Positions 40,426-42,173 of a stretch of DNA of 64,000 bases are shown in pieces. The DNA is from Mizuhopecten yessoensis. Its lineage: Eukaryota. The notes beneath the pieces were generated by a model. That model was given only the letters and a program-made list of their open reading frames with translations, searched no databases and had not been told where the DNA came from. Made by a program: the position numbers and the translations under genes. Each line of letters begins with the position of its first letter. Position 1 is the first letter of the stretch. Location of the stretch: the NCBI RefSeq assembly GCF_002113885.1, contig NW_018407615.1, positions 1,095,620-1,159,619 of the forward strand, given 5' to 3'.

Positions 40426-42173
40426 TCAGAAAAGATTGTTTCCGTTCCGATCGGTCAACTCCAGTACCCCAGGCAAACTGATGACCCCCGGATCTGAGAG
40501 ATACGACGGGCGGTATGGTCCACCAAGTGTGGAGCGCTGCAGGGGAACTCGGGGCTGACCGAATAGTAGGGCGCATCTGTCTCTATTAGGAGTCTGGTGG
40601 ATGGAATGCATTTCACACCATGGCGTTGGGCGTCGTTGAATTTCGACACCATCCTTGACACGCTGAAGCAGGTGTTAGGGAAACGCGTCAGCCAGGCCTG
40701 AATCACTTCTTCGGTGCCACTAAAGCAGTGCAGCTGGATCTTCTGCTCTGGTGGGACCATCTTCCTCACCACATCCAGGCACCTCATGTAGGCTTCAAGC
40801 CCCGTCGGGTCATCCCTCAGTCCCTGGATGTGCAGGATGAGTGCCTGGCGGGGCCGGGTGCACGGGAGCAAGCTCCGCAACTGCTGCTCCTGGCGAAACC
40901 ACAGGTCCGGGGAACGAACGGTATGGTCAATCCCCACCTCACCAAATCCTGCCACTTCCGGGACCTGTAGAAGATCCAGGAATGTCTGTTTTTGTGACGG
41001 GTGAGGAAGTGCTTCGGGTGCACTCCTATCGCCACTAAATACCCGTCCCGGGTCAGCTCTGGTATCTCCCCCGGAGAAGGATATGTATCGGGGTCGCAGA
41101 ATACCGCCACTCCAGACATGCTGAGTGCATATTCCTTCGAAGTGACAGGTATTGCGTCCTCCACCTCCCTCATTGAAGCGTCCTTCTGTAGTCTCAGCTT
41201 CCGACGGGCCCGGTCCAGGTGGAAGTGGCTATCGAAGGCATGGAGCATGGGTAAAAGGTCCACGCCGGGGGACTCGACCTCGAGCTCCCCCGAGGGTTCT
41301 GGGTCTTCTTCCAGAATGGCTCCCAAACACACTGGTGTGGGTACCTGCTGGGGGATTGCTTCGGCATAGGTGAGGCCCAGGTCCGTCAGGGTAGGAGATG
41401 GCAACGCCTCAGCCATCACCTTCAGTCGGTAATCTGCCAGCCATCTGCAATCAACCGGTATCGGTTGAGGTGGTCGCAGAGCTCCTGGAGAGTGGCTCGG
41501 GGTCCCAGCATGCACTTGGCCATCGTGACCAAGCAGGAGTACCGAGTGAGTGTGAGCTCTTCAGACAGCTCGACCTCGAGCTCCCCCGAGGGTTCTGGGT
41601 CTTCTTCCAGAATGGCTCCCAAACACACTGGTGTGGGTACCTGCTGGGGGATTGCTTCGGCATAGGTGAGGCTCAGGTCCGTCAGGGTAGAAGATGGCAA
41701 CGCCTCAGCCATCACCTTCAGTCGGTAATCTGCCAGCCATCTGCAATCACCCGGTATCGGTTGAGGTGGTCGCAGAGCTCCTGGAGAGTGGCTCGGGGTC
41801 CCAGCATGCACTTGGCCATCGTGACCAAGCAGGAGTACCGAGTGAGTGTGAGCTCTTCAGTCGGTCGGCAACGTCTTCGTCGCTGGGGTAGCTTACAAAT
41901 ATGCTCACTTACCCACTGGTCTGAGAACAGGGAGGTCGCTGCACCAGCCGCCTTACGGAGCCAAGGCTTGTTGTCCATCCGAACTGCCACGGCCACCTGG
42001 CCAAGAACAATGCTCTCAAGGTGGTCCGATGTCAATTTGTCATTCAGGAACAGTTCCCTGAATAACCCCTCATCATCCATCAGCCGCCCGTCGGAGGTGG
42101 CGTCCTCCTCCAGTCCTAGCAGCCTCCGTTTTGGGGAAATCTGTGTGGGATTCATCACTGCCTCAGTTGAATC
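40426..42173 (-). pseudogene. ORF3: unknown N-terminal region plus TatD-family metallo-nuclease (frameshifted, internal duplication)
   Basis: Motifs in TatD order: FDSHFHLD, AIGVHP, GFGEVGID, LILH, QLHCFSG, FSVS, IPSTRLLIETDAPY, LTDRNGNNLF, spread over ORFs 40817..41515, 40455..40955 and 40426..40611. Confidence 0.9.

Follow-up and report, generated by a model that had tools for sequence, protein, structure and literature searches.

Long terminal repeat (LTR) retrotransposons are usually described as gag-pol elements in which env is an occasional extra gene, and to our knowledge enzymatic third genes are documented mainly in rotifers. The closest described systems are the Juno and Vesta LTR retrotransposons of bdelloid rotifers, whose third open reading frame (ORF3) encodes a DEDDy-type 3'-5' exonuclease that keeps its catalytic residues, lacks a transmembrane domain, and has been proposed to provide auxiliary processing of RNA or single-stranded DNA ends (Rodriguez, Kenefick, Arkhipova 2017, PMC5408684). 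Nuclease ORF3s go unmentioned in a recent survey of env-carrying Ty3/gypsy elements (PMC13524379). Here we analyse a stretch of 64,000 nucleotides from the scallop Mizuhopecten yessoensis (NCBI RefSeq assembly GCF_002113885.1, contig NW_018407615.1, positions 1,095,620 to 1,159,619 of the forward strand; hereafter the window, with positions counted from its first letter). Its minus strand carries an LTR retrotransposon of the Ty3/Gypsy type, now old and decayed. The third gene of this copy, which sits between pol and the 3' LTR, ends in a TatD-family nuclease domain. LTR retrotransposons with an enzymatic third ORF are thus already known, and the TatD version is what appears to be new. A preliminary description of the window, made from the letters alone, knew of no LTR lineage with TatD cargo; we likewise found no account in the searched literature of a TatD domain in a retroelement, the repeat catalogues Repbase, Dfam and GyDB lying outside that search. 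The lineage appears to be wide, partly intact, and undescribed in the searchable literature.

The TatD observation in the window is real and lies far beyond chance. Two frame changes divide the nuclease domain into three pieces, which were searched separately, each in its own frame. The middle piece matches the Pfam TatD_DNase profile (PF01026) with 70.8 bits and an E value of 1.5e-19, against a cut-off of 27 bits, and spans profile positions 88-236 of 253; the same piece also matches the NCBIfam model TIGR00010 (E 7e-16). The short first and last pieces, without a Pfam match on their own, align with intact relatives at 66% identity. Read in succession, the pieces give the TatD motifs in order: the first has DSHFH and GVHP, the middle one GEVGID, ILH, HCFSG and ETDAPY, and the last the N-containing motif of the C-terminus. 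All six metal-ligand positions (HxH, Glu, His, His, Asp) are kept across the three. The preliminary description had placed such a nuclease on the pol strand, in the interval bounded by the pol stop (42212) on one side and by the polypurine tract (PPT) and 3' LTR (40255-40218) on the other, with its metal ligands retained despite the frameshifts; coordinates, motifs and ligands are all borne out, and the comparison with the Pfam profile that it proposed gives the strong match of the middle piece. Its range of 40426-41240 does hold the TatD sequence, but the domain runs from 41248 to 40426 and is only the C-terminal part of a longer ORF3, and the 3' LTR it reported is present but ends after 29 bp.

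That longer gene begins about 56 nt past the pol stop, with its first ATG at 42155, and is homologous throughout its length to the open ORF3 proteins of related elements: the segment after the pol stop resembles the N-termini of intact ORF3s, and the segment before the TatD domain resembles their conserved middle region. The ORF3 of the window's subfamily is of a shorter kind, without a long linker. In the window copy the frame of ORF3 changes three to four times in all, the two changes in the TatD domain included; about 0.3 kb of the gene is duplicated in tandem, and sequence has been lost in at least one internal deletion, but no stops occur within the aligned frames. Since the two copies of the duplication are 99% identical, this event must be much younger than the rest of the damage to the element.

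The same architecture is found elsewhere, and often in far better condition. In a word-indexed protein search the nearest relatives of the window TatD piece come from Mizuhopecten yessoensis itself (81% identity) and from Pecten maximus (75%), and a HMMER search returned 414 representative clusters at E <= 1e-10, many of them of 400-1085 residues with a C-terminal TatD; intact relatives match Pfam TatD_DNase with 105-140 bits across the whole profile. When the genomic context of relatives was compared with the open gag, pol and ORF3 of Pecten, the element ORF was found to recur at seven further genomic loci, in six species and three phyla, and on four Logan contigs of transcript or genomic origin (Table 1). 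LTR pairs are 99.2-100% identical in L002, L003, L004 and L008, with 4-bp target duplications in three of the four. All three genes are open in two copies, L002 (gag 553 aa, pol 1359 aa, ORF3 876 aa) and L005. Across the relatives ORF3 starts 28-176 nt downstream of the pol stop, and the Logan contigs contain the unspliced pol-ORF3 junction.

To lessen ascertainment bias, an unselected scan with patterns from the ORF3 alignment was run over metagenome contigs and prokaryote-labelled assemblies. It found 26 ORF3-type loci, 12 of them with at least 1.5 kb upstream of the match, and at every one of these 12, the loci with enough upstream DNA, the C-terminus of pol lies upstream on the same strand. 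The scan also returned loci from human-gut metagenomes, which are bacterial contigs and were left out of the analysis. The preliminary description had looked to other family members to carry the ORF as well, and they do, in relatives from three phyla and in 12/12 scan loci. Scallops, sea stars, sea urchins and a brachiopod all have copies with this layout, often in intact form, so the TatD gene has long been retained as a part of the element rather than having arrived by accident. One further Pecten maximus locus (L001:17303-22566) is rearranged, the segment from pol to the ORF3 start being inverted relative to an open TatD ORF of 405 aa, and a second TatD piece, 98% identical, lies 3.4 kb off.

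Table 1. Features of the element in the window and related copies found elsewhere
Feature	Positions in window	Strand	Remarks
5' LTR	48489..48745	-	about 257 bp, TG...CA; start is an exact match to the 29-bp 3' remnant
Primer-binding site (PBS)	48477..48487	-	TGGCGACGAGG; one nt after the 5' LTR
gag (broken)	46157..47573	-	CCHC zinc knuckle; Pfam zf-CCHC E 4e-8
pol (broken)	42212..46058	-	protease, reverse transcriptase, RNase H, integrase, C-terminal PHD finger (Pfam)
PHD finger, end of pol	42218..42352	-	Pfam PHD E 1.7e-8
ORF3 (broken)	40426..42155	-	N-terminal helical region, middle conserved region, C-terminal TatD; by homology to relatives
TatD nuclease domain of ORF3	40426..41248	-	three frames, i.e. 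two frame changes
PPT	40247..40255	-	GGGAAAGAG; purine run immediately before the LTR start
3' LTR remnant	40218..40246	-	29 bp, 100% identical to 48745-48717
L002, Pecten maximus			LTRs 285 nt, 100% identical; target duplication TAGG
L003, Argopecten irradians			LTRs 99.2% identical; gag-pol-ORF3 in order; no target duplication read
L004, sea star Patiria miniata			LTRs 99.5% identical; target duplication GTAC; ORF3 open, 767 aa
L005, Tara Oceans scaffold			gag, pol (1359 aa, with PHD) and ORF3 (673 aa) all open
L007, sea urchin Lytechinus variegatus			gag-pol-ORF3 in order; LTR pair not found
L008, brachiopod Lingula anatina			LTRs 99.5% identical; target duplication CATT; ORF3 open, 808 aa
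L009-L012, Logan contigs from four runs			integrase-PHD end, 28-nt gap, ORF3 of 804 aa

Selection on the nuclease was gauged from the proportions of nonsynonymous and synonymous differences (pN and pS) between the window pieces and the Pecten copies, corrected dN/dS being unusable with saturated synonymous sites. The middle TatD piece gives pN 0.115 and pS 0.80 (saturated), a ratio of 0.14, and the RNase H and integrase pieces give 0.16 and 0.09 against the same Pecten locus. These comparisons indicate that TatD is constrained like pol; the ratio near 1 that the preliminary description had named as evidence against a functional cargo did not occur, the TatD value being the same as that of pol.

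The origin of the nuclease was approached with an unrooted neighbour-joining tree of 94 nuclease domains (274 columns, capped distances, 100 bootstraps). It splits 16 bacterial, four spider and four gastropod proteins from the other 70 in 80/100 bootstraps, and the 70-protein side holds all six proteins with verified element context. Mean identity is 0.46 among element copies, 0.30 between element and spider proteins and 0.25 between element and bacterial ones. As a host-type comparator we took the spider TATDN2-like protein P0349, whose multi-exon gene of 8.9 kb is flanked by Kelch and lectin genes and has neither gag nor pol in its neighbourhood. A host TATDN2 gene would be multi-exon and outside any element; the window ORF and its relatives are intronless and stand between pol and the 3' LTR, nor do they group with the TATDN2-like proteins in the tree, in which no confirmed scallop TATDN2 is represented. 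A recent copy of a host TATDN gene, another outcome that the preliminary description had allowed for, is therefore rejected: besides being intronless and inside LTRs, the nuclease is about 30% identical to the spider TATDN2-like proteins as against about 46% among element copies, and the bootstrap split separates them. The cargo is thus old and has diversified along with the elements that carry it; its source may have been an animal TATDN2-like gene or a bacterial YcfH-like gene.

The encoded protein is best seen in a natural relative, P0124 (673 residues), which was modelled with AlphaFold from a 64-sequence alignment at a mean predicted local distance difference test score (pLDDT) of 80.8, with the barrel above 90. 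The model begins with a confidently predicted helical N-domain (residues 1-66), which a disordered linker (67-217) joins to a second domain (220-370); the latter opens with a hairpin-helix unit bearing near-invariant Cys and His residues and continues in helices, and the TatD barrel (395-673) comes last. Among members the linker is variable, and in most of them the middle domain starts with a C2H2-like zinc-finger motif. The top Foldseek matches are S. aureus TatD, YcfH, TM0667, TATDN3, TatD and TATDN1, with target TM-scores of 0.66-0.83 (0.75-0.83 for the barrel against YcfH and TatD structures), so that the TIM-barrel, amidohydrolase-type fold is predicted on this relative, not on the broken window copy. 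With the whole P0124 model Foldseek returned TatD matches only and none for the two upstream domains, and in Pfam searches of the ORF3 proteins TatD was the sole match. Of the solved structures, E. coli YcfH is the closest in sequence (E 4e-17), with TATDN3 (1e-5) and TATDN1 (9e-4) a long way behind, and the ORF3 nuclease domains fall below every NCBIfam equivalog cut-off. Among 64 ORF3-type proteins the ligands D399, H401, H403, E499, H536, H570 and D621 (numbered as in P0124) are either invariant or conserved to at least 90%, and seven ORF3 proteins show no signal-like N-terminus or hydrophobic segment (Kyte-Doolittle maximum 1.11-1.54 in a 19-residue window). On this evidence, ORF3 is predicted to be a soluble multi-domain protein with a C-terminal TatD TIM barrel and an intact two-metal site. 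The second-best NCBIfam model, at E 1e-11 to 1e-21 and below its cut-off, is QatD, the TatD nuclease of the Qat anti-phage system and so a TatD enzyme in another genetic conflict; it was matched by P0124, P0121, P0123 and window positions 40458-40955. Among the predicted viral structures of BFVD, one giant-virus protein alone has the same fold at E <= 0.001.

Overall, we believe with considerable confidence that these copies represent a lineage with gag, pol (protease, reverse transcriptase, RNase H, integrase and PHD finger) and a TatD-bearing ORF3, in which ORF3 is ancestral and under purifying selection and in which the nuclease, we infer, acts on replication intermediates. The preliminary description had already taken the nuclease for a functional part of the element in the env position, and the recurrence of ORF3 in relatives, the low pN/pS and the separation from TATDN2-like proteins agree with that view. 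Its more specific ideas, that the nuclease may trim ends, remove hybrids, repair integration gaps or help to avoid host sensing, stand as candidate roles. Of the probability that we give to function, somewhat under half goes to an action on the element's own replication intermediates. Consider a copy in the course of reverse transcription. The nuclease would then remove RNA from RNA:DNA hybrids, or trim the 3' ends of complementary DNA (cDNA) or RNA, during or after the reaction, and the upstream ORF3 domains would anchor it on nucleic acid or in the particle. ORF3 would probably be translated from a separate, perhaps spliced, message, given that it starts a short distance past the pol stop. 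On single-stranded DNA and RNA, TatD enzymes act as 3'-5' exonucleases. The proposed role is suggested by its match to the cellular activities of TatD and TATDN2 enzymes, the latter having been reported to degrade the RNA strand of R-loops in the passage of PMC12754012 that cites Jaiswal 2023.

At the same time, several points weigh against this reading. The element already has an RNase H, which leaves no obvious need for another enzyme that degrades hybrids. Saturation of the synonymous sites makes pN/pS no more than a bound, and the neighbour-joining tree is unrooted, with one outgroup protein confirmed as a host gene and none as a scallop TATDN2. The window copy is dead and so uninformative on activity. 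Annotated open TatD proteins led to most of the loci, so the sample is biased towards open ORF3, and at several such loci pol is broken and ORF3 open; this could reflect the bias itself, or it could hint at host co-option in some copies.

A different use for the same enzyme, which we regard as unlikely though by no means negligible, is counter-defence. The host phyla of TatD elements have large cGAS/STING-like repertoires, and ORF3 might destroy free cDNA, RNA:DNA hybrids or other nucleic acids that trigger host innate sensing or silencing, as an element-encoded analogue of a host clean-up exonuclease. The same conservation evidence that speaks for a replicative role speaks for this one; RNase H already serves replication, so an extra nuclease may have another purpose, and TatD nucleases do occur in conflict systems, as the weak, below-cut-off QatD match recalls. 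Against it, no localisation signal or partner was identified for ORF3, its upstream domains have no recognised family in Pfam or Foldseek, and sequence alone does not separate it from replication processing. In its boldest form, which we think less probable again, the idea would make this a deep, still active Gypsy lineage of marine invertebrates that has carried a dedicated TatD module since before it spread across Mollusca, Brachiopoda and Echinodermata and uses it as counter-defence; were that true, many annotated 'TATDN2/YcfH-like' genes and some 'bacterial' contigs from metagenome-assembled genomes (MAGs) would be this element.

It is quite improbable that many of the open TatD ORF3s are now host genes and that the selection we see reflects a host function. 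L004, L007 and L008 do have ORF3 open with gag or pol interrupted, and annotators treat TatD ORF3s as ordinary genes. However, the loci were picked through open annotated proteins, all three genes are open in L002 and L005, the LTRs of L002 are identical, and many clusters have tens to over a hundred member sequences. Moreover, the LTRs that enclose the open ORF3s of L004 and L008 are 99.5% identical, which marks these insertions as young and counts against co-option.

Less probable by far is a one-off capture, in which a processed host TATDN copy or an unrelated neighbouring gene landed in a single copy of the element. The window copy is broken, and the NCBI automatic names of some relatives read 'putative deoxyribonuclease TATDN2', but the ORF recurs across at least six species in three phyla, LTR-bounded in several, and has pol beside it at all 12 informative metagenome loci; its pN/pS is low, and it stands apart from TATDN2-like and bacterial TatDs in the tree. 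Distribution across species refutes this explanation, and we reject it. An envelope-like ORF3 we find scarcely credible and also reject, as nothing but its location favours it, after pol and before the 3' LTR like the third ORF of errantiviruses (PMC13524379): the ORF3 proteins have hydrophilic N-termini, no 19-residue hydrophobic window above 1.6, and neither a signal peptide, a transmembrane or fusion segment nor an env family match, Pfam finds TatD alone, and the model predicts soluble helical domains and a TIM barrel.

The remainder of the window copy is that of a Ty3/Gypsy-type element, dead as a whole. On the minus strand the order is 5' LTR, PBS, a leader of about 0.9 kb, gag, pol, ORF3, PPT and 3' LTR remnant. 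The end of the 5' LTR (48489) was set by CA, one spacer nucleotide and the PBS common to relatives; the same 11-mer PBS stands one nt past the 5' LTR in Pecten L002, Argopecten L003 and Patiria L004, and purine-rich tracts occupy the position of the PPT in L002, L004 and L008. The window lacks the remainder of the 3' LTR, direct-repeat and self-BLAST searches having given only the 29-bp match, and no tRNA gene lies within the window. LTR, PBS and PPT of the Ty3/Gypsy type are thus all present, the 3' LTR of the window as 29 bp only and the relatives with complete pairs. Compared with the open Pecten genes, the window gag shows 46% identity (tblastn) and the window pol 61% across residues 10-1352. 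Roughly one frameshift and one stop break gag; pol has about five frameshifts and about eight in-frame stops before its stop codon at 42212-42214. On separate pieces of pol, Pfam recognises gag-asp_proteas, RVT_1, RT_RNaseH, Integrase_H2C2, rve and PHD, and the gag zinc knuckle and the Ty3/Gypsy order of protease, reverse transcriptase, RNase H and integrase are found in the window, the order again in the open L002 pol. The PHD finger ends pol in every relative examined (L001-L005, L007-L009, L012) and travels with the TatD ORF3; chromoviruses carry a chromodomain at this place, the end of the integrase.

In composition, G+C content rises from about 0.35 to 0.45-0.62 across roughly 40.2-47.6 kb of the window; within this interval it is 0.55-0.62 in the ORF3 region (40200-42200) versus 0.44-0.55 in pol and gag (42200-47400). 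Just past the 3' LTR remnant it falls from 0.55 to 0.29, and beyond lies an AT-rich stretch and then a tandem array with a unit of about 144 bp, which begins a few hundred bases past the truncated LTR. Satellite arrays occupy 5219-9226, 12153-14034, 22578-24143, 37573-38027, 38946-39850 and 58183-64000 of the window, with units of 49, 29, 31, 33, about 144 and about 68 bp. On the minus strand at 50160-54646 there is also a one-strand run of open reading frames of 155, 188, 255 and 513 aa. The 155-aa frame has a weak, below-cut-off match to GDSL lipases (E 1.5e-4), the other three have no Pfam match, and the run may represent another mobile element, one whose first ORF is of esterase type.

Regardless of the function of ORF3, public annotations already give its products other names. 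Element ORF3s are listed as TATDN2-, YcfH-, YabD- and HI_0454-like host genes (among them P0002, P0122, P0123, P0279, P0292, P0302, P0312 and P0318), and P0002 is a chimeric gene model in which a fragment of a reverse transcriptase of the long interspersed nuclear element (LINE) type is joined to a TatD piece. Whole gag-pol-TatD elements, or their ORF3, are carried by contigs of a Sedimenticola sp. MAG (L093-L100) and a Nitrospinota MAG (L101), and the same is seen in MAG-labelled proteins, including Candidatus Thiodiazotropha (P0281, P0196, P0323, P0167, P0165). Such 'bacterial' contigs are most likely host-animal DNA binned with symbiont genomes, which makes their 'TatD family hydrolase' labels misleading. 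A figure of the giant-squid Hox cluster lists 'TATDN2' among transposon-like genes (PMC6962438), and this too may be an element ORF3. Thus, dozens of TATDN2-, YcfH-, YabD- and HI_0454-like proteins of molluscs, brachiopods and echinoderms, together with 'TatD family hydrolase' entries in symbiont MAGs, are probably transposon ORF3s, and mislabelled in this way they can mislead analyses of gene families and of horizontal transfer.

How, then, does this lineage compare with known systems? PHD fingers are known in CR1 non-LTR elements, Rehavkus DNA transposons and Chlamydomonas elements (reviewed in PMC8557442); there, as in the present lineage, the finger is an accessory domain of a transposon protein and presumably reads chromatin, but here it ends the integrase of a metazoan Gypsy lineage and accompanies a TatD ORF3. 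With the cellular TatD family (YcfH/YabD, TatD, TATDN1-3) the nuclease shares its Pfam domain, its predicted TIM barrel and the full set of metal ligands, and with TATDN2 the placement of the nuclease domain C-terminal to a long, partly disordered extension. Unlike the cellular genes, however, it is intronless and inside a mobile element, and its upstream domains, kept among element copies, do not align with the spider TATDN2-like protein. Errantiviruses and other env-carrying Ty3/gypsy elements likewise have a third ORF between pol and the 3' LTR, shortly past the pol stop (PMC13524379), whereas the ORF3 described here is predicted to be a soluble nuclease without membrane or fusion features.

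The closest analogue remains Juno and Vesta, which are LTR elements with a non-envelope nuclease ORF3 in a similar position and with a probably similar role. The folds differ, DnaQ/RNase D-like there and a TatD TIM-barrel metallo-hydrolase here; no DnaQ/RNase D-like DEDD domain was found in ORF3, for which Pfam and Foldseek give TatD-type matches only. The hosts differ too, rotifers in the one case and molluscs, brachiopods and echinoderms in the other, and the present lineage adds conserved upstream ORF3 domains and the PHD finger at the end of pol. Juno and Vesta showed no clear departure from neutrality within genomes (PMC5408684), whereas here constraint across the lineage is clear. TatD is thus a second, unrelated nuclease fold fixed as the third gene of an LTR retrotransposon, in at least three animal phyla and with apparently intact copies. 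Together with the rotifer elements, it suggests that retroelements have repeatedly needed an extra nuclease, and hence that there is a step of their replication, or of their conflict with the host, that awaits exploration.

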